From Thecamonas trahens ATCC 50062 (lineage: Eukaryota > Protista > Apusomonadida), in the NCBI RefSeq assembly GCF_000142905.1, contig NW_013657629.1, positions 62,001-126,000 of the forward strand: 64,000 nucleotides of DNA, written 5' to 3'. The translations under genes were made by a program, and so were the position numbers. Numbering within the stretch: the first letter of the stretch is position 1; the number at the start of each line of letters is the position of its first letter. The notes beneath the pieces are model-generated. The model ran no database searches. It saw only the letters and a program-made list of their open reading frames with translations, and was not told the DNA's origin. Positions 8,912 through 53,700 of the stretch are shown one piece after another.

Positions 8912-11145
8912 TGGCAGACTTTGGCCTCTCGGCGCAGCGCGAGTCACTCGACTCTGCGGGCGAGAAGATTGCAGCTAATCAGGACGCCTCGTCTGCTTCG
9001 CGGAAGAGCCTAGCTGCTGCGACCAAGGCGTTCAACAAGTCGAGCGAGGGCAACGGAAAGGCGGATGATGGGGGAGAGGCAGGGGCGGGAGGAACAGAAG
9101 CGGGTGCCGGGGCGAGCAAGCCCAAGAGTAAGCCCAAGTTTGCTGTCCTCCTCCGCAAGTACCAGAAGGAGATCGATGCGCTGACTGTCCGCGCCCGCTT
9201 TGCGGAGAAGCACTTTCTCGGCCTGTACAAGGACCTTGCCGAGGTGCCTGATCCTGCTCCGCTGCTGGAGCTCTCCATCGCTGCTCTCCGCGACGCTGCT
9301 GCCGACAACGCTGCCGACGAGCTTGCTGCCGAGAACGCCCGCCTCCAGGCGGAGCTTCAGGCCAACGCGGCCGAGTTTGCCTCGCTCCGCAACCAGGACG
9401 TGACCATTGCCCGCCTGGAGAAGGAGGTCCGCGAGCTCAGTGCCGAGCTCGACGGGCAGGTCACCGCCAAGTCGGAAGAAGTCGTCGCCGTCCTCGAGGC
9501 CGAGTACGAGGCCAAGGCCGCGCTGCTCGCCGAACGCGAGGCCCGGACCCGTGCCCAGATGGCTGCCATGGAGGAGGACTACGCTCGCCTCCGCGCCCAA
9601 CTCTCCACCGCCCAGACCACCTCGTTCGGCGAGTCGCAGGCTGCCCAAGAGGCCGATGACGTCCGCGACGCCCAGATTGCCGCGCTCTCCGCCGAGCTCG
9701 GCCGTGCCAAGGCGCGCGTCATGGCTCTCGAGGCCGAGCGCGCGGCTGCGGAGCGGACTGCAGGCACCGACGTCGGTGGCGCCGCCAGCGCCGGCGCTGC
9801 CTCGGACATTGGTGTCCTTGTCGACCAGGTTGCCGCCCTCGAGCTCGAGCTCTCGCGCAAGGACGTCGAGATCTCGGACCTGGTCGACGAGCTTGCTGCC
9901 GCCCGCGACGACGCCGCCGCCGCCGCCCGTGCCGCAGCCAGTGACCTTGCCCGCCTCCGCGACCAGCTTGTCGCCAAGACCGCAGAAGTCGACGAGCTTG
10001 TAGCCGAGATGGCGCTCGCGCCGTCGACCGATGTCGATGCGCTCCTCCGCGAGCTCGCCCTCCTCAAGGGCATCGAGTTTGGCGAGGAGACGCCGGGCGA
10101 CGCCCCGCTCGATGCCCTGCTCATGGCCAAGAACAAGGAGCTGGAGGCCGGCACCGCCGCGCTCCGCTCCTCCCTCGCCGCTGCAGAGCGCGACGCCGCA
10201 GACATCGCCGCAGAGCGCGACGCTGCTGCTGCCGCCCTTGCCGACAAGGACGCGCTCATCGCCCAGCTCGAGGCTGACATCCTCAACGTGTCGGCAGCAG
10301 CAGCGGCTGGCCCGCAAACGCCACGCGCTGCGCCCGCAGACGCCGCAGACGCCCGCGAGGCCGCGCTAGTCCAGGCACTGTTGCCCGGCTCGGCCGGCGA
10401 GGCCCGGAGCCCGGCGCAGCTCGCGCCGCCAGCAGATGCATTTGCCGTCGTCGTCGCACAGCGCGACCGGTTCAAGGCCCGCGTCCTCGAGCTCGAGACC
10501 GAGAACGCCACCCTTCACGAGCGGGTCCACACCGCCCGCGCCGCCGCCGACGCCCTCGAGGCCGACAACCTCGAGTTGTACGAGAAGATCCGCTTCCTCG
10601 AGTCGTACGACGACATTGCTCGCGAGCGTGACGCAACCATGCTCCGCATGGAGTCTGGCGAGCTTGGAGGCCCGCTCGCCATGCCCGCAGGCACCGCAGG
10701 CACGAGCTCGGCAGCCGGCGGAGCAGGTAACGCCGGAGGAGGCACAGGTGGCTCGGCAGAGCTCCGTTACCGCAAGCTCTACGAGGACTCGATGAACCCG
10801 TTCACCCTCTTCCATCGCAAGCAGCGCGACTCGTCTTACAACGAGCTCAACGCCGCCGAGAAAGTCACCCTCAACACCTCGCGCATCCTCCTCGGCACCA
10901 AGTTTGCCCGCACCTTTGTCTTCTTCTACTCGCTCCTCCTCCACGTGCTCGTCTTCTTTGTCCTCTATCGCCTCTCGGCCTCGTCCTCAACCTGCTCCAC
11001 CGCCTCGGGCGTGCCCTCGACTTTCCGCCCGGCGGCAACCGCAGGCGCTCTCAGCTCCGCAACCGCAACCGCAACCGCCCTCGCTTCGGCCTCATCGTCG
11101 GCCTCGTCGTCGGTTGCCTCGGTCGCCGCCCGCCTCCTCCGATGA
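8506..11145 (+). CDS. CASP/COY1 golgin (CUX1 N-terminal-like domain, coiled coil, CASP_C, tail anchor); 2 exons
   Basis: Exon1 8506-8560, intron 8561-8917 (GTACGT...GGCAG), exon2 8918-11145. Motifs LLRKYQKEIDALTVRARFAE..Y..L.EVPDP; QRDRFK..ELE; DNLELYEKIRFLESY; YEDSMNPF; C-terminal TM FVFFYSLLLHVLVF. Confidence 0.93.
8595..8908 (+). repeat. Intronic 21-bp minisatellite plus (CT)n/(CA)n microsatellites
   Basis: About 6 copies of GGGGACGGGCATG(A/G)CCTG(GCT/CCA), two GGGGACGAAAGGACAGACATGACCTG units, then long TC/AC tracts. Confidence 0.9.
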
Positions 11146-11191
11146 CGCTCATCTCTCGCTGGCCTCACTTACGACCGTGTATTGACTGACG

Positions 11192-13743
11192 CTACAGCGA
11201 CTGCAGGTATGCACGGCGCTCATCAACTCGCTTCTTTCCGTGGCGGCGCACCAGCTTCTTGAGTGCCTTTGACGAGCCCATGAGGATGCGGGCATCGTCG
11301 GCCGGCGAGAACGGGTCCTTGATCTTGGCCACCAGCGCTTCACCGGGCTCGGCGCCGCGCTCGACGAGCTTGCGCAGGTACCTCTCGGTCCGGCCCACCG
11401 AGCCGTTAAAGTTGAAGACAAGCCGAACAAGGGTGGCAATCGGAACGCCATAGTTGGTGGAGAGCGCCTGAAGTGCCTCGGCAGCCGACAACATCCTGTT
11501 TTCTGTCCCGACTGCCTCGTCCGCCGCCGCAGCCTGCGCCTTGGTTCGCGACTTGGCCTTGGCCTTGGTCTTGGCCTTGGCCTTGGCCTTGGTCTTCTTG
11601 CTTGATGACTTGCCTGGTCTGTCTGCCAACGACACTTCTTTGGTCGACGACGCCTTTTGGGTCGACGACGCCGGGCGGGCCAATGCTGGGCTGGCCTTCG
11701 CGGGCGTGGATGGCTTAGCCGCGGCCGACGCCGACGCCGGAGGCGGGGATGACGTCTTGCGCCGCGGCGGCGTCGGCAGCGGATCGCTGCCCTTGTTCTT
11801 CCACCACGGCCTAGTCGAGAGATGCTGGCGGACAGCAAGGAGCGCAGCGCGTGCATCTTCATCGTCCGAGTCTGAGAGCTCCATCGTTGCGAGCTTGGCC
11901 CACTCGTTGCGCTCCCCGTCAACGTAGAGGAACATGCTCGAGTTGGCAGCCATCTCCATGGCGGCAATGTCCAGCGGCTGCACGTCGCTGACTACTGCTG
12001 CTCCGCTCAGCGACTTGGCCTTCTTGGCCGCGGGCGCCGCGTCGGACTCGGCGTCGCCTGGCGCCTGGCGCTTGTTTGTGCCACTTGTCGCCGGCGGGAC
12101 GTCCAGAAAGCCAGCCAGCCGCTGCATGGTCAACTCCGGTTGGGCGGCAAGGCCGTTAAAGCGGATGCACAGCGCCTGAAAGGTCCGAGTCGGGAACAGA
12201 CCATCGCCCGTCGCCTGCCTGAAAATGTCCCTCGTTGAGATGCCCTCATGGGCCGCCTGCATTGCCGTCGCATACTGCCAAATCGCCGCGTCCTCCGCGT
12301 CGGTGTACTTGCGCGACTTGCTCGACGAGAGCTTCTCGGTCATGGCCCGGGCCATGGCCGCTGCCGCCTCCACCGAGACCGTTGACTGGTCCGGCGTCGC
12401 AGGCTGCCTGGTCGCCGCTGCTGCCACCGCCGCCGCCTCGGCGCTGGCCTTGGCTCCCTTGCCATTCTTGGCATTCTTAGCTTCCTTGGCCGCGGCCGCC
12501 GCTGCAGCCTTGCCGGCCTTGACCGCCGCTGCACGGGCGCCCCTGACCTGCTTCTCCGTCGGCAGACGGGCTTCAACGTTGATGCGCGTGAGCTGGGCCT
12601 GACGAGTCTTGGGCAGCTGGACCAGCTCGGCCCATTGCTCCTTGAGTGCGGCGGCCGACATGCCGTCGACGAGCCCCAGCACGGCTGCAACCTCCCACAG
12701 CCACTTGCTGTCAGCATGCGCGGCGGCATATCTGAGGATGACCGCGTTGTCGACGTCGGTAAAGGCAGCGTCAAGTCGAGCCTCGTCCTCAGCGTCATCT
12801 TCGGCCTTCTTACTGTTCTGATGCGGCGTGAGCTCGTCGACCGCAATGGCGCGGAGGCGGGCTTTGTATGCGTCGGGCTTTCCCACGATGGAGCGCCACC
12901 GCCCGTAGAGAGCCTCGGCGTTGCGGCCTTTGATGAGACCAATCCGCTCCGCCAGCTTCCACGTCTTGCGCGACATGATTGTCGCCCCAGCCGCGATCTC
13001 GGCCTCAGCAAACCGCAGCATCACCGCCTCATCCATCATGGAATACGGCTGGCGGGCTTGCGAATGTGCGGCGACAGGCTCGGGCTTGTCAGTCGCGGCG
13101 TACTCGCTGAGCGGCAGCAGCTTGCCGGCCGCCACTGAGTCGGTGACAAATCGCTCCAAGTACGCCTTGCCCACCCGCTTAGACTGCCCCGGCGACAGCT
13201 TCTTTGGCACCAGTACAATGCAGTCCTTCACCTTTGTCGTCGCCATCCGACCGCCGTGCTTCTGTCTCCCGCAACCAGCCGCAACCGACCAACAGCACCA
13301 TCATCACCATCGCCCGTCGCCACGCCACCACCAGTAGCAACGCCACCACGTCCCACCACCATCAGCATTGCCAATCACCACGATTACCACGCCCACCACG
13401 CCGCACCGCGACCACCGCGACCACCACCAACACCACCACCACCACCCGCAGCACATCCCCCACCAACACCACCACCACCACCACCCGTAGCACATCCCCC
13501 GCAAACACCATCACCAACCCAGCCCGCACCATGAGTACACTGCCCTTCCTCTCTTCCCTCTCTCCTCCACCAACCCTTGCCTTTCCCTTGGCGCCAACCT
13601 TGGCGCCACCGGCCACCAGCCGCCGCCCATGCCCGCTGTGTACGTACCGTGATAAGCTCCCGCATTTGCTTCTTTGTCTTTCCCATGCTCATGTAGAACA
13701 CCATGGGGAGGCCACCTGCTGTGAACAGCTTGGATGCCGACAT
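11192..13743 (-). CDS. RAP1: RAP1/TERF2IP-like telomere protein (BRCT, three Myb-like repeats, Rap1 C-terminal domain); 2 exons
   Basis: Exon1 13743-13648 (MSASKLFTAGGLPMVFYMSMGKTKKQMRELIT), intron 13647-13262, exon2 from 13261 (KHGGR..FVTDSVAAGKLLPLSEY), resembling the RAP1 BRCT. Myb starts RQPYSMMDEAVMLRF, FTDVDNAVILRY, RKYTDAEDAAIWQY. RCT-like end FSPADDARIL..LVRRHGKKRVDERRAYL. Confidence 0.8.
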
Positions 13744-14107
13744 GGTGGTGGGTGAGGTGGTGTCAGGGGAAGGCTAAGTGGCCGTGTCCTCGCAGCCAGC
13801 TCCCGCTCTACGACCTTTTTCGGAGCGTGACAAGCCGTCGTCCTGCTCCCCATCATCTCCCCTTACACACACACACGCATGCGACCTTCCCATAATACCC
13901 GTTACGGGCCGTGCTCAGGCCCTCGCCATCTCTTCTGGATGCATGTGTCGCCTTGTTTGTCCCCTGAACTCTTGAACGGGGCGGCAGGGTGGCTACGACG
14001 AGGTGTGCCAGGCAGAGGTGGGGGAGGGGGGCGGGTGGTGACCGTGATCACCATCGATCATGATCGGGCTTGTGATCAATGGCAACACACCTCACGCGCT
14101 CTTCACC

Positions 14108-47125: not shown

Positions 47126-48769
47126 CTACGCCTTGGCACGCTTCCCTGCCGGCTCGCCTTCGGCTCCGCTGACCCGGCGCTTGCTCCCAACAGCCGCAGC
47201 ACTGCTGCCTGCGTCGTTCCCCCCGGCAGCCGCGCTCGGATCGCCGCGGCGCTTGGCCGCGTAGGCAGCCTTCATCTTGGTAAGGTTCGCAGTCTTGGCT
47301 GCCGCATGGTCAACGATCGGCTCTGGATAGTCGCGCCCAAGGACCACGCCCGCGTCGGCGAGCACGTCCTCCGGTGCGTCGAACGGTGCCATGAGGTGCT
47401 TGTCTGGCAGACGGGCAAGCTCGGGAACCCAGCGGCGGACATAGGCGTGGGCAGACGCTCCATACTTGTTGCCAAAGCTGATCGGTGAGTACACCCGCCA
47501 GTACTGGTGGAAAAAGGCCGAGGCTGAGAGCCAGAGCCAGTTGCCGATGTTGAGGTAGTGGTCGGCGTCGAGAAGGAGCGAGTTGAACACTCCCGCACCG
47601 GCCTCCCAGCTCTGCCACAGGTAGCCGCGGGTGAGGAAACAGGCCACAAGGTGGCGCGCCAAGTGATGAACCCATCCTGTTGCCCGCAGCTGTCGCATCA
47701 CTGCGTCGATGAGGGGGAAGCCGGTCCGGCCCTCGGCCCACGCCGCCACCTTGTCCGGCTCGTCATCCCACGGAATGATGCGGGAGAGCGGATTGGTGGC
47801 CATCGCCTCGTAGCCTGGCGTCCGGCTCCCAACCACTGTGTAAAACTCGCGCCACAGGACCTGGCCCACCAGCGAGACCGGCGGCTGACTCACACTCCGC
47901 TTGCTCTTCTCCTCCACCGCTCGCAGCTGCTCGTAAAACCGCCGCACAGAGAGCGTGCCAAATTTGAGATGTGCAGAAAGGCCCGTAGTAGATGGCGGCT
48001 CGGCGAATGGATTGGTCTTGGGCTTTTCAAACGTCACAACTCGGTCCACGTCCGCAAGGAACGCACGCATCCGCTCTTGCGCCTCGGCCTCACCGCCCGG
48101 AAACGCGCGCGAGCTGCCGTCGCCCTCGCTTCGCCCAGGAAACGCAGCCATACCCGGAACAGCAAACCGCTCAGTATCCTTTGCTACCGCGTCGACCGCA
48201 GCCTGAGGCAGCGGTGGCAGCTCTGTCGGCGCCTCAATCGGCGCCTGCGGCTGCCACCCGCGCTTGGCGATCAGCTTCCTCATCCCACCAAACGTCGTCG
48301 GTAGCGCGGCATCCGGCACACTCTCCCACACTTCCATCGGATAGATCAGGTTGGGCTCGCTCGTCTCCACCGCGAGCTTGTCATCGGCCGCCATCCGTGT
48401 CGCCTTGGCGTCGCGGATCTTGGCGTATGGTTCGTAGTCGGCCTCAAAGTGGAGCGAGTCGGCCCCGACCTCGCGCCACAGCGCCTGAAGTGTGTCCAGC
48501 GCTCCCTTCTCCGGCGTGCCCTTGATCACCAGCAGCTGCGAGCCGAGCGCCCGCAGCGACGAGTCCAGCGCCAACAGCGACTCCAGGAGGAAGACTAGCC
48601 GGGTGTCGCCGACGTACGCCCGGGTGAGCAGGTGCGGATCGAGGACAAAGACAGGAACCACCGCGGCTGCCGCATCCGCCGCCGCCGCCAGCGCCGGGTT
48701 GTCGTCCACCCGTAGCGCCTTGCGGAACCACACCATGGCCACCTGTCGCGAACCCATCCTTGCTGCCAT
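47126..48769 (-). CDS. (6-4) photolyase / animal-type cryptochrome family protein
   Basis: VWFRKALRVDDNPAL; FPGGE.EA; FEKPKT; TTGLSAHLKFG.LS; LWREFY; GRTGFPLIDA.MRQL..GWVHHLARHLVACFLTRG; LLDAD..N.GNWLWLS.SAFFHQY.RVYSP. Confidence 0.96.
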   Translation of the reverse strand: MAARMGSRQVAMVWFRKALRVDDNPALAAAADAAAAVVPVFVLDPHLLTRAYVGDTRLVFLLESLLALDSSLRALGSQLLVIKGTPEKGALDTLQALWREVGADSLHFEADYEPYAKIRDAKATRMAADDKLAVETSEPNLIYPMEVWESVPDAALPTTFGGMRKLIAKRGWQPQAPIEAPTELPPLPQAAVDAVAKDTERFAVPGMAAFPGRSEGDGSSRAFPGGEAEAQERMRAFLADVDRVVTFEKPKTNPFAEPPSTTGLSAHLKFGTLSVRRFYEQLRAVEEKSKRSVSQPPVSLVGQVLWREFYTVVGSRTPGYEAMATNPLSRIIPWDDEPDKVAAWAEGRTGFPLIDAVMRQLRATGWVHHLARHLVACFLTRGYLWQSWEAGAGVFNSLLLDADHYLNIGNWLWLSASAFFHQYWRVYSPISFGNKYGASAHAYVRRWVPELARLPDKHLMAPFDAPEDVLADAGVVLGRDYPEPIVDHAAAKTANLTKMKAAYAAKRRGDPSAAAGGNDAGSSAAAVGSKRRVSGAEGEPAGKRAKA

Positions 48770-49629
48770 TTGCTTCGGCTGCGTGACGTGTGGCCGCAAC
48801 TCGTCGTCGGTGACTCCGCTGGAACCTCCGCCATGCTAGCAACAGATGTTGGCTGATGTGACATGTTTGTTCGGTCTGGGTGCTCCTGTCATTAAACCCA
48901 TTTGGCGAGGGGACAATTTGGCAGTGGAACCAATAAAATGCTCAGCCGGACTCCCTGGGTTTGAATGCGTTCATCCTATGCTGAAAATACCCGATCCCGT
49001 CTCGCTCTCGGAAGTCAAGCAGCATGAGGCTTGGTTAGTACTGTGGTGGGGGACCACACGGGAATACCGAGTAACGCATTCTTTCTTCTTTTTGCCCAAA
49101 CACACACCCTCCCTGTCTGCATCCCCCCCCCCCCACACACATACATCGTCGCACTTTGGGGGACAAATGATCTGAGCTTGGATCGGGTTGGTTAGTCTAC
49201 GGGGAGCCTGTCGCCAAGTTGCGTGTTCGCTTGGCGATCTCGTTCACGATTTCCGACGGCCGGTCACTGGGACCAAACGGGGCGAAACCGTACTCGAGGA
49301 GGCGGAAGACAGTGGCGACGTGATCGGCCCTCCCATCACATCATGCATCTCACTCGGCTCAGCTGGGCCTAGCGGTGGTGCAGCGAATACGTCAAAGTGT
49401 GAGAGAGCGAGCGGGTGGTATGGTTCACGAATAGCCCACACACTCCGACAAATCGCCGTCTCCGCCAATTACCTTCCACACAACACGTGTCGTCAACTGT
49501 CCGCACGCGTCAAGCTATCGTCATCGATCGGGAACGCAAGGAAATTGGCTGACGCAGACAAAGCTCCTCGCGCACTCAGTGCTACTGAACCCCGTACATC
49601 TCTCTCTGCATCACCTTGCTCCCGCAGTT

Positions 49630-50751
49630 ATGCTCGGAAGCCGCAGCAGGTTGCTCTACGCGGCGTCGACCGTTGTCCAACTCTGCTTCTCCTTCGCCTT
49701 CTCGCGACTTGCGGGCCGCGCCAACAATGCCGTCCGCTGTCGGCTCGCCACCCTCTCGGCCATGGCGACGTCTATTGCCGCCCTCGCCGCTCTCCTCCAA
49801 GCCGGGGACATCGGTATTATCGCAGTCCATGGGCGTCCGGTTGCCTGGTCTCGCTACGCCGACTATGCGCTTGCTACCCCATGTATGTTGCTAGGTGTGG
49901 TACAAGCGTCTCCCCTATCCAACCCTGCGCTTTTTTTCTCACTTTCACTCACCCCCCTTCACCCGCACTCCCCCAACACAGTGCTCCTCCATCAGCTCCA
50001 GCTTCTGGTAGACATGGGCAGCGACGACTGCGCACGTGGCATGCTCTTCCAGGTCCTTATCATTTGCGCCGGAATGGCCGGGGCAATGATCGATGACCTT
50101 CCGGTCTCGCTGGCCACCGCTGGCTTTGGCGTTGTTCTCTTTCTCGCCAACGCCGTGTCGCTGCGGTCAGCGTTTACCCGGCTCGAGACCAAGGCCCGAG
50201 TGCGGACCTTTGTGGGCCGCTTTGTGACGGCGACTCTGTGCATCTGGATGCTCTACCCGATGTGGTGGCTTGTTGTCCGACTCGAGCTCATCGCTGACGA
50301 GACGTCGGCGGTGTTCAACCTTGCGTTCGACGCGCTGTGCAAGGGCGGCTTTGGTCTCGTCCTCTGGGCCTTTGCCCACCGCAACCGGGACGCCATCGAC
50401 CATCTCTCCACCGTAATCTCGCAGCCGACGCTGGATACTACGTCGCTCATCGAGCTTCATAGCGGGGCGAAGGCGCCTGCCGATAACGGTGCGTCTGTCG
50501 GGCTGACTGTCGACGTCGGCTTGCGGACGATGTCAGAGTCGTCGTCGTCGTCGTCGTCATCATCGTCATCATCGTCGTTGCTCATTTCGCAATCTGACTC
50601 TGATGATGATGCGACCGGAAAGGTAGTTACGGCCAAGCGAGTCTTGCGTCGGAAACGCCGAGAGAAGAACAGGTCACGGGCGATGTCGCGGACGTCAGCG
50701 CGTGTGGCGCCGGCGCGGTCGCCATCGCTGCCGCACATCATGGGCGTTTAA
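49630..50751 (+). CDS. Divergent microbial (type-1) rhodopsin with long C-terminal tail; at least 2 exons
   Basis: Removing intron 49883-49981 (GTATGT...ACAG) gives helix C WSRYADYALATPLLLHQL. Helix F IWMLYPMWW; helix G FDALCKGGFG with the retinal Lys; 7 hydrophobic segments. An extra upstream exon is possible (CCCGCAG near 49627). Confidence 0.9.
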   Translation: MLGSRSRLLYAASTVVQLCFSFAFSRLAGRANNAVRCRLATLSAMATSIAALAALLQAGDIGIIAVHGRPVAWSRYADYALATPCMLLGVVQASPLSNPALFFSLSLTPLHPHSPNTVLLHQLQLLVDMGSDDCARGMLFQVLIICAGMAGAMIDDLPVSLATAGFGVVLFLANAVSLRSAFTRLETKARVRTFVGRFVTATLCIWMLYPMWWLVVRLELIADETSAVFNLAFDALCKGGFGLVLWAFAHRNRDAIDHLSTVISQPTLDTTSLIELHSGAKAPADNGASVGLTVDVGLRTMSESSSSSSSSSSSSSLLISQSDSDDDATGKVVTAKRVLRRKRREKNRSRAMSRTSARVAPARSPSLPHIMGV

Positions 50752-50766: not shown

Positions 50767-53700
50767 TCATGCCCTCGGACGAGCGGCGCGGGCACAGCCG
50801 ACCACACGCCCGGCCCAGAGGGCAGCAGAGATCGGCGTCTGAGCCTCGAGCTCGATCAGATCAACACGCGCCGGGTTCTCCGGGGCGGTGGCAAGAATGT
50901 GGAGGCTGGTACCGGAAGCCTCGGCGCGAACTATGCGGTCGAGCGGGAGCTCCCAGTTCGGCGAGTCGTCTTCGATCGGCGCGGAGGCAGTAGCTTGGCT
51001 GCCATCACCAGCCTGATTGCAAGGATAAAGCTGCAGAGCATTCGGCGCGATGCGAGCAAATGCCAGCGGACGTGATGGGAGGGCGAGGCCGCGTGAGAGG
51101 CCACCGACAACGTCGCCGCGAAGAGCTGCGGTGAGGAGGACGTCGACATGGTGGGGCCCAACGCCAAGTGAGGCCCGGAGCTCGGCTGGGCTGAGCGAAG
51201 GCACCGCAAGGACGAGCCAGCGGAGGTACGTGAGGTCGCTCGAGGGGCAAGCCCGGGCGGCAGCAGCCATCAGCGGCGTCATGCCGGACTCGTGCGCCAC
51301 ATCGCCAAGCCAGAGGTCGGGTGTATGGAGCAGGAGTGCGTCCAGCAGCTCGGGCATGCTCTCGAGATCGGTGTGGAGAAGAGTGCAGCCGCCGACGCCA
51401 CGCGAGACATCAAGCGTTGGCCGCTGCGCCGCTGCATACGCCACCTCGCTGCGCCCGCACATGATGATTGGCGTTTGGTCGCCGGCAATAGTGACGTTGA
51501 CCTCGGCGCCGGCGGCGATGAGGGCGCACGCCGCAGCGGTGTTACCGGCCTTGACTGCGAGACTGAGCGGCGATGCGCTATCGTTGTTGATGGCGTCGAC
51601 GTCAGCGCCAGCGTCGATAAGTACCGCAACAAGCGTAGTCGCCATCACGTCGCGCACGTGGCTTGCGGCGAGATGGAGCGGATGCGCGCCGCGCTCGTCG
51701 GCCGCAACTACCAGCGACGGCGGTGAGGCGGCGAGGATGCACTCCAAGACTCGTGCAGCATCGCCAGGAGCAGCGGCTGCAGGCGGAGCGCATGCTCGGT
51801 GGGCGGCATTTTGGCCGCGACTGTCAACCAGGCTGACGGTGGCCTGAGCGGCGAGGAGGGCGACGACACCGTCGAACCATGTGCGACTTGCAGCGAGCAT
51901 GAGCGGTGTCTCCGAGCTGGCATTGGCATAGTCGACAGCGGCGGGACAGGCCGCCGTAAGGAGAAGCTCTACCACCGACGCGTTCCGCGATGCGACGGCG
52001 GCGTGGAGCGGGGTGTCGCCGCGGGTGTCGGGGGCAGCAACAAGGTCGCAGCAGGCGGCTGCTTCTGTTGAGAGGAGCTCTGCCACGGCGCCGGGCGAGC
52101 TGCGCGCGGCATGGAGGAGGGTGCGGCCCGAGGCATCGCGCCCGGTGAGCGGCCATCCCAGGCCGCGGAGCATAAAGCTGAGGGCAGCGACGTTGTCTGC
52201 CGCTGCGGCGCGATGGAGGAGATCGGTGGCTGCCGCGGTGCCGAGTGACTGCAGTGCAGGCTCGAGGACGGCCATGACCTCAGTGGGTGCATGGGCGGCG
52301 GCGACAGCGAGCGGCGAGACGGCGGCAGGCGAGAGGGTGTGGGCAGCGGCACCGGCAGCGAGGAGGACAGCTACAATGTCGGCTTTGCCACGGACAATGG
52401 CAGTGTGAAGCGCGGTGTACCCGGCAGTTGTGGCGGCGTTGATCGGCGCACCAGCGTCGATGAGGACCGCCACGGGTGCGGCGGTCGACGCCCACTGCGC
52501 GGCTGTGACGAGAACGGGCGATGCATAGCTTCCGTGTGTTGCATCGAGCGGCGCACAGAGGTCATCGACCAAAACCCGCATGACAGGCACGTGTTCTCCA
52601 GTGGCTGCCAGATGCAGCGCCGACGCTAGGACATCGGGGCCGATGTTACCGACACGGGCGAGGAAGCGGGCGACGTCGACCCGCCCGCGGCGGGCGGCAA
52701 GCTCAAACGCGGTGTGGCCGGCGTCATCCGTGGCAGCCACCGCAGCTGGTGAGAGTTCGACAAGCACTCGGACAGTCTCGAGATGGCCACCCTCAGCTGC
52801 TAGATGCAGCGCTGCGGCAATGCGCTCAGGATCGGCACCGCTCTTGACAAGGAGCGCCACCACTTCGGTGTGCCCCGAGCGGGCCGCGGCTTCGACGGCG
52901 CTGGGCGCGTCGCCGGACAAGCGGTCAAAGGTGCCGTCACATTGACGAGCGCCAGCTTTGAGCAACTCGCGGACGATGCCAAGGTGGCCGGCCTTGGCGG
53001 CGCCTGTGAGCGGCGGAGATTGCGGCGGCGCGTTGACATCGGCACCGGCCGCAACAAGCGCGGAGACGACCCGGGTGCGGCCGCGGGCGGCAGCTAGAGA
53101 GAGCGGCGTCGAGTCGGTGGCGGTCGTCAGCGCGTCAACTGGCGCGCCGGCAGCCAGAAGCGCGCGCACCGCATCGAGATTCCCAAGCAGGGCTGCAGTG
53201 TGGAGCGGGGAGGTGCCGGCAACAGCACGGGTGTCGACGCGGGCGCCGGCGGCAAGAAGCGCAGACGCCACATCAAGGTTATTCTCCTTGACGGCGTGAT
53301 GGAGCGGGGTGAACCCGTCGTGTGAGCGGGCATCGAGGGCAGCACCGCTGGCGATGAGCACTTCGGCGACCGCCAGTGCGCCGGTCCGCGCCGCGAGATG
53401 CAGCGGGGTGCGCCCGCTCTTGCTTTGCGCGTTGATGTCGGCGGCCGAGTGGCCAACGATGACCTTGGCCACTTTCGCATGGCTTCGCAGCGCAGTGACA
53501 TGCAGCGGCGTCCATTCGCGGTCGTTGACAACCTTGGGCGACGCCGCTAGCTTGTTCAGCAAGTGCTCTGTTGCGCTCACATGCCCGCACCACACCGCGG
53601 CGTGGAGCACCCGCCCACCGCAGTCATGAACCCGCGCGTCGATGTCGAACTCGAGGTGCTTGCCAAGGATCGCTAGCATGCCGACGTTGCCCGAGGCGGC

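Follow-up and report, generated by a model that had tools for sequence, protein, structure and literature searches.

Why should a gene of the (6-4) photolyase/animal-type cryptochrome family and a rhodopsin gene stand head to head in the genome of the apusomonad Thecamonas trahens ATCC 50062? An earlier note on this DNA had read the arrangement as a co-regulated ultraviolet (UV)/blue-light module served by a bidirectional promoter. We analysed the window in which the pair lies, a stretch of 64 kb (C51:62001-126000; C51 is contig NW_013657629.1, and positions given without a contig are counted from the first nucleotide of the window) in an assembly of 28.7 Mb, 131 contigs and ~64% G+C. The start codons are at 48769 on the minus strand (photolyase) and 49630 on the plus strand (rhodopsin); the genes are therefore head to head with an ATG-to-ATG gap of 860 bp (48770-49629), and the divergent orientation and the distance of about 860 bp are as first described.

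The adjacency of the two genes is probably incidental, with the genes working independently, because a 5S rRNA gene interrupts the spacer, the pairing is not conserved and no shared element could be detected. Both genes would then deal separately with short-wavelength light: the photolyase would repair (6-4) photoproducts in the nucleus, driven by near-UV/blue light, and the rhodopsin, an apusomonad rhodopsin (ApuR), would act as a near-UV/violet-gated anion channel driving short-wavelength avoidance. Each protein gene most likely has a core promoter of its own, within the ~125 bp that adjoin the photolyase gene or the ~300-500 bp that adjoin the rhodopsin gene, because an active-looking gene for RNA polymerase III (Pol III) within a dispersed repeat divides the spacer. 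The juxtaposition would be lineage-specific; in a compact genome, the simplest account of it is a neutral accident of gene order, and if the two genes were co-expressed, that would be a by-product rather than the work of an evolved module.

The spacer and its 5S rRNA gene

The spacer (48770-49629) had been taken for plain intergenic DNA, but it holds a complete 5S rRNA gene, so that the two protein genes are not in immediate contact. This Pol III gene occupies 48963-49082 on the plus strand and matches Rfam family RF00001 with 104.9 bits (E 1e-23; gathering score 38) over the whole model (1-120/120); it is the sole Rfam match in the 64 kb. The gene is followed by the T-run TTCTTCTTTTT, and AATAAAAT is found ~25 bp upstream of it. 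Its 120-nt sequence is 100% identical to 12 of the 12 other copies that were sampled. There are at least 24 dispersed, single 5S copies in the genome, on different contigs, 20 of them with an equal score; further 5S contigs are C7, C23, C33, C34, C39, C48, C54, C62, C64, C67, C72, C73 and others.

Comparison by blastn with 12 other 5S loci places the gene within a dispersed repeat unit (48894-49134, plus strand) that includes ~70 bp upstream and ~50 bp downstream of it. The identity to these loci is 89-99% over 135-245 bp and reaches over 440 bp (94%) with locus L016, and the similarity to the copy on contig C48 extends to 49327, at 94%. The Pol III repeat unit makes up 240-430 bp of the 860-bp spacer, and what remains is ~125 bp beside the photolyase ATG and ~300-500 bp beside the rhodopsin ATG. 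The 5S genes look like a homogenised and possibly mobile family that is dispersed rather than arranged in a tandem array. A heuristic based on open reading frames (ORFs) and third-position G+C content (GC3), applied to 12 loci to see whether the copies prefer divergent spacers, was too noisy to read. Pol III genes and TFIIIC sites act as chromatin boundaries in other eukaryotes, and by analogy the spacer 5S gene might have a boundary role here.

A bidirectional promoter is not supported by this layout, in which a Pol III gene within a dispersed repeat unit fills the middle of the spacer. The alternative to independent genes is nevertheless a true co-regulated 'avoid-and-repair' UV module, with a light- or UV-responsive spacer element driving both genes and the 5S gene either a later passenger or compatible with such control. 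The head-to-head orientation and the 860-bp spacer speak for a module of this kind, and the dispersed 5S repeat could postdate the formation of the pair; the Pol III gene that stands between the two genes, with only ~125 bp left on the photolyase side, speaks against it.

Shared regulatory elements

A sequence scan of the spacer found one palindrome with a CACGTG core, ACACGTGT (49482-49491), ~146 bp upstream of the rhodopsin ATG, which would fit a module with a common element. CACGTG has a background of 0.27-0.33 per kb, however, and is present upstream of only one of the seven other light-related genes; on these two grounds, its background frequency and its absence from most light-related genes, we rejected it as a G-box/E-box. 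Shared 7- to 9-mers in the upstream regions of eight light-related genes were no more numerous than in random controls, a comparison of very low power given eight short sequences. The search of the spacer for motifs in common with other light-related genes, which the co-regulation proposal had looked to, thus yielded no shared cis-element: the k-mers are at or below the controls and CACGTG is not shared. A sigma-70 promoter and terminator scan of the window was set aside as inapplicable to a eukaryote.

Chance and conservation of the pairing

We estimated a gene number of roughly 10,000-14,000 from local gene spacing and counted two rhodopsin genes and three photolyase-family genes. Random placement then gives a post hoc probability of ~0.001 that a rhodopsin gene adjoins a photolyase-family gene and, equally post hoc, of 0.002-0.005 that any two of 6-8 light-related genes are adjacent. 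Within one genome the adjacency is suggestive; across a scan of ~250,000 windows it is expected many times over.

Conserved linkage in relatives, the absence of which had been named beforehand as counting against co-regulation, was not found: the sole relative with usable flanks has its photolyase in another neighbourhood, without a rhodopsin. This relative is represented by the Tara Oceans contigs L001, L009 and L010 (5.3-6.6 kb), the photolyase of which is 58% identical to that of the window, and the gene order there is Rpp14 (plus), a gene of 145-205 amino acids (minus), photolyase (plus) and annexin (minus). No rhodopsin similarity was seen on these contigs, over the 1.8 kb that precede the photolyase and the 3 kb that follow it. 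The T. trahens orthologues of the annexin (62-68% identity) and of the 145-residue protein (42-44%) are 11 kb apart on contig C13 (neighbourhood C13:307665-321336), with other genes and no photolyase between them, a linkage that is partly conserved with L009 and L010. The photolyase neighbourhood of the Tara relative is accordingly recognisable in part in T. trahens, with the photolyase itself elsewhere. As the annexin is 62-68% identical and the linkage of the annexin and 145-residue genes is partly conserved, the marine pelagic contigs L009 and L010 provide evidence for what would be an uncultured planktonic relative of Thecamonas. The comparison was made from the photolyase side, with a single relative and with orthology by best hits. 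The sequences related to the rhodopsin have the following extents: the environmental contig L006 (1.5 kb) begins inside the rhodopsin gene, protein P0122 is from a transcriptome, the contig of P0123 is 1.2 kb long and the one match in a JGI metagenome, L027 (2.2 kb, 32% identity), is without the 5' side.

Several points weigh against an incidental adjacency. In eukaryotes, co-expression is common among head-to-head genes separated by less than 1 kb. The predicted products also fit a single theme: one would sense UV/violet light and the other would repair UV lesions. The chance of such a neighbourhood is ~0.001 under random placement, the motif comparison with its eight short sequences had very low power, and the sole relative compared is distant (58% identity), has no known ApuR and was matched by best hits. 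A co-regulated module would draw on the same probability and on the same theme, as ApuRs with a DAQ motif absorb near-UV/violet light (PMC12557545) and (6-4) photolyases, by textbook knowledge, repair UV lesions, and it could also draw on the CACGTG palindrome 146 bp upstream of the rhodopsin. Set against it are the absence of the pairing from the only relative with usable flanks, the background rate of CACGTG and its absence from most other light-related genes, the lack of k-mer enrichment, the retinal-synthesis and other photoreceptor genes that are unlinked to the pair, and the post hoc nature of the p-value. We consider the module unlikely and continue to regard the two genes as neighbours that probably work independently.

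A more specific proposal is a lineage-specific UV 'sense-avoid-and-repair' unit, in which a spacer element would co-induce the UV/violet anion channel and the (6-4) photolyase and the 5S gene would be embedded in the shared region or bound it. We think this quite unlikely. Were it true, it would be the first eukaryotic case of functionally linked rhodopsin and photolyase genes, from the group that is sister to animals and fungi; a heterotrophic flagellate near the animal/fungal root would coordinate UV avoidance with the repair of UV damage through gene order, and the bacterial rhodopsin-photolyase partnership would extend to eukaryotes. On present evidence the value of the locus is smaller and more practical than a functional linkage: it settles the exon structure of a DAQ-type ApuR gene, in which an in-frame 99-nt intron hides the family-diagnostic Gln, it places an ApuR in a genomic context that is absent from the ApuR paper (PMC12557545), it comes with an inventory of the light-related genes of an apusomonad genome and it illustrates that an apparent promoter spacer can conceal a Pol III gene.

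The photolyase gene

The gene on the minus strand (47126-48769; stop codon 47126-47128, first ATG 48769) has a single exon and encodes 547 amino acids. Pfam finds DNA_photolyase (PF00875) at 123.7 bits and FAD_binding_7 (PF03441) at 218 bits, each near full length. In HMMER comparisons with solved structures the best match is the Chlamydomonas animal-like CRY (aCRY, or CraCRY; PDB entry 5zm0; E 3e-131), followed by the Drosophila (6-4) photolyase (PDB entry 2wb2; E 3e-122) and by mammalian CRY1 and CRY2 at about E 1e-118 (mouse CRY2 1e-118); other families are more distant, with plant CRY1 at E 8e-55, a class I cyclobutane pyrimidine dimer (CPD) photolyase at E 1e-52 and CRY-DASH at E 9e-32. 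By this ranking of E values against solved structures, which is not a tree, the protein belongs to the (6-4) photolyase/animal-type cryptochrome clade of the cryptochrome/photolyase family (CPF) superfamily. Its nearest database protein is the 58% identical photolyase of the Tara Oceans contigs; named relatives from green algae, Nannochloropsis, a choanoflagellate and animals are 42-50% identical, the closest of them (green-algal and Nannochloropsis) 46-50%.

The His pair of (6-4) photolyases and animal-like cryptochromes, reported in the earlier note as HHLARH, is present at residues 368-373 (47651-47668, minus strand; located by script) and aligns to MHHLARH of CraCRY. The Trp tetrad is complete: in the alignment to 5zm0 the protein has Trp at the positions of W322, Y373, W376 and W399 of CraCRY, so that the Tyr of CraCRY Y373 is replaced by Trp, as in the animal enzymes. 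The final 40 residues are basic and resemble a nuclear localisation signal (KRRV...KRAKA). To judge by the HHLARH motif, the four Trp residues and this tail, its most likely function is nuclear repair of UV-induced (6-4) photoproducts, driven by near-UV/blue light. It is like the (6-4) photolyases and animal-like cryptochromes (the Drosophila and Arabidopsis (6-4) photolyases; Chlamydomonas aCRY, 5zm0) in its two domains, in HHLARH and in the full Trp chain, and differs from them by its short basic C-terminal tail. By analogy with Chlamydomonas aCRY, it might also have a secondary role in signalling, like a cryptochrome.

A flavoprotein that is mainly a signalling cryptochrome, acting with the ApuR in an apusomonad blue-light photophobic response, would be a further explanation of the pair, and a very unlikely one. 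Its best solved relative is indeed the bifunctional Chlamydomonas animal-like CRY, and HHLARH and the Trp tetrad are by textbook knowledge kept by animal cryptochromes too; the blue-light photophobic response of the apusomonad Podomonas is, moreover, described in a paper that names no receptor (PMC12714865), which leaves room for a cryptochrome in blue-light avoidance. The protein, however, has a basic tail of ~40 residues in place of a long regulatory C-terminal extension, and all of the catalytic hallmarks of (6-4) repair are kept. Since the remaining photolyase-family genes resemble a CRY-DASH gene and an additional photolyase, 47126-48769 is also the only (6-4)-type repair candidate in the genome.

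The rhodopsin gene

The gene on the plus strand (49630-50751) matches Bac_rhodopsin (PF01036) at 67.4 bits in Pfam and matches the solved rhodopsins weakly (E ~1e-7). It had first been read as a single uninterrupted frame; the gene is real, but the frame includes a 99-nt intron (49883-49981, plus strand; GTATGT...polypyrimidine...ACAG; phase 1), and because this intron is without a stop codon the ORF reads through it in frame. Exon 1 (49630-49882, plus strand) runs from transmembrane helix 1 (TM1) to the start of TM3 and is collinear with P0122 from Manchomonas and with the environmental contig L006. Exon 2 (49982-50751, plus strand), supported by Pfam PF01036 and the alignments, runs from TM3 to TM7 and on into the C-terminal tail. 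The intron is absent as exactly 33 codons from the contiguous L006. With a single codon split across the junction, the two exons meet flush when aligned to Manchomonas (TPWLLTQLFLLVD) and to L006 (TPMLMRQLQMLVH), which has no interruption. The spliced protein has 340 amino acids, of which ~90 form a C-terminal tail that is Ser/Asp-rich and basic.

Removal of the intron restores the Gln that is fixed in the ApuR family as well as the 13-residue TP...VD spacing. In exon 1 the codon for the TM1 Gln is at 49678, that for the Asp equivalent to D85 of bacteriorhodopsin (BR) at 49861 and that for the Ala equivalent to BR T89 at 49873; in exon 2 the Gln equivalent to BR D96 is at 49993, the Asp equivalent to BR D212 at 50329 and the retinal Lys at 50341. 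The TM3 motif (BR 85/89/96) is therefore Asp-Ala-Gln after splicing, compared with ATQ in Manchomonas and DSQ in L006. The TM1 Gln lies in VVQLCF, which is AVQLAF in P0122 and VVQFTL in L006, and FDALCKGGFG of TM7 aligns to the retinal Lys of sensory rhodopsin II and of the ApuR relatives. Splice models with donors at 49895, 49897 or 49900 and acceptors at 49995 or 50011 gave Gly or Asp at BR D96; they were ruled out, as the Manchomonas homologue, the fixed Gln of the family (PMC12557545) and the intronless L006 all fit 49883-49981.

Searches with the rhodopsin were run with the unspliced in-frame ORF or with single exons. Word-index searches returned no match, the query itself included, and exhaustive HMMER was used instead; at E<=1e-3 it matched only 16 of 1.84 billion cluster representatives. 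Those ranked first to third are P0121 on the 1.5-kb contig L006 (51% identity), P0122 and the short environmental fragment P0123; the best full-length match is P0122, from the apusomonad Manchomonas bermudensis (36% identity; EukProt). The L006 sequence (L006:3-952; Logan SRR23274481) is an environmental ApuR relative with D-S-Q and without an intron where the rhodopsin of the window has one. Its two halves were predicted as ORFs that overlap and differ in frame, suggestive of either a frameshift or another intron.

ApuRs are specific to apusomonads and have DXQ or XTQ in TM3, with a fixed Gln at BR D96 and in TM1 (PMC12557545), and their C-terminal tails are variable and Ser/Thr-rich (PMC12557545; Galindo et al., PNAS 2025). 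Since the relatives are few and of apusomonad or environmental origin, and since D-A-Q, the TM1 Gln and the TM7 Lys are all present, the plus-strand gene is assigned as a two-exon DAQ-type ApuR. DAQ ApuRs, including TtApuR of T. trahens, absorb near-UV/violet light and have light-gated anion conductance (PMC12557545), and the role that the authors propose is the avoidance of short-wavelength light (PMC12557545). The rhodopsin of the window shares with TtApuR and the DAQ ApuRs the seven-helix type-1 fold, the TM7 Lys, D-A-Q, the TM1 Gln and a variable, Ser-rich tail; it could be identical with TtApuR or closely orthologous to it, and family membership predicts that it is a near-UV/violet anion channel. 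The short-wavelength theme of the earlier note is borne out in that the rhodopsin is a DAQ-type member of this near-UV/violet anion-channel family (PMC12557545). The identities given there to both genes likewise agree with the Pfam domains and with the ranking against solved structures; to judge from their sequences, both genes are intact and belong to families that have already been described.

On its 3' side the rhodopsin gene faces a convergent gene for an ankyrin-repeat protein of 1179 amino acids. The stop codon of the rhodopsin gene has its last base at 50751 and that of the ankyrin-repeat gene begins at 50767, and with only ~15 bp between them the 3' untranslated regions must overlap.

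Known rhodopsin-photolyase systems

The arrangement had been called undescribed. For eukaryotes this stands within the literature library that was searched: we found no paper there on an opsin or rhodopsin gene together with a photolyase gene in a divergent or bidirectional arrangement, and the ApuR paper (PMC12557545) makes no mention of photolyase, cryptochrome, genomic context or synteny. In bacteria, however, a rhodopsin-photolyase linkage has been published (PMC9769723): the heliorhodopsin of Trichococcus flocculiformis shares an operon with a CPD II photolyase, binds this enzyme and increases repair about threefold. Proteorhodopsin-bearing Flavobacteriia have extra photolyase genes (PMC5932025), and the Trichococcus operon is the only documented functional coupling between the rhodopsin and photolyase classes. 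Both systems have a gene for a retinal protein beside a photolyase gene. In Trichococcus they form a bacterial one-strand operon, the retinal protein is a heliorhodopsin, with its inverted topology, the photolyase is of CPD class II, and binding has been demonstrated (PMC9769723), whereas the pair in the window is eukaryotic and divergent, with a 5S gene between a type-1 rhodopsin (an anion channel by family) and a (6-4) enzyme, and any coupling of the two would be conjectural.

By analogy with Trichococcus (PMC9769723), the photolyase and the rhodopsin might be physical partners, with the rhodopsin tuning repair or signalling, perhaps via its long C-terminal tail; the ~90 Ser/Asp-rich and basic residues of the ApuR tail would offer a means for this. 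We consider such a partnership extremely improbable. The families differ on both sides, a type-1 ApuR in place of a heliorhodopsin and a (6-4) enzyme in place of CPD II, the pairing is not conserved, and gene adjacency in a eukaryote is weak evidence of protein interaction. The compartments would differ as well, as the photolyase has a tail that resembles a nuclear localisation signal and expressed ApuRs localise to the plasma membrane (PMC12557545). Independent genes that are neighbours by accident account for the pair more simply.

Light-related genes elsewhere in the genome

The rhodopsin and the photolyase were described as the only two light-absorbing proteins in the 64 kb, and the genome searches agree: they place no further rhodopsin, photolyase-family, BLUF, phytochrome or PAS_9/LOV-type match inside the window. 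No phytochrome was found in the genome and no PAS_9 match on contig C51. Besides the ApuR (plus strand) and the (6-4) photolyase-type gene (minus strand) on C51, the light-related genes are each on a separate contig, and only the photolyase and the ApuR are linked. A CRY-DASH-like gene is on contig C74 and the third photolyase on contig C4. The second rhodopsin, on contig C11 (L007:5449-8340, plus strand), is a histidine-kinase rhodopsin of 964 amino acids with Bac_rhodopsin, HisKA and receiver domains, in which Pfam detects no HATPase_c domain at E<=1e-4.

Contig C6 carries a fusion of phytoene desaturase, phytoene synthase and beta-carotene dioxygenase (crtI/crtB/BCD) in a single ORF of 1545 amino acids (L025:2148-6782, plus strand), with the domains Amino_oxidase (phytoene desaturase), SQS_PSY (phytoene synthase) and BCD (beta-carotene 15,15'-dioxygenase). 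Judged by these domains, a single polypeptide unites nearly all of a retinal pathway, and its gene is unlinked to either rhodopsin; an RPE65 oxygenase gene is on contig C15. The carX-carRA-carB-carO genes of Fusarium form a light-induced carotenoid/opsin cluster that is conserved among related fungi. The two cases are alike in that a eukaryotic opsin gene is physically linked to another light-related gene. The Fusarium opsin gene, however, joins genes for retinal and carotenoid synthesis, whereas here neither the C6 fusion nor the C15 RPE65 gene is linked to the rhodopsin, and the pairing is not conserved.

Contig C20 has an ORF of 1335 amino acids (L024:3619-7623, plus strand) in which two BLUF domains accompany an adenylate/guanylate cyclase domain. 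This double-BLUF cyclase resembles a photoactivated cyclase and is another candidate blue-light receptor for apusomonad photoavoidance.

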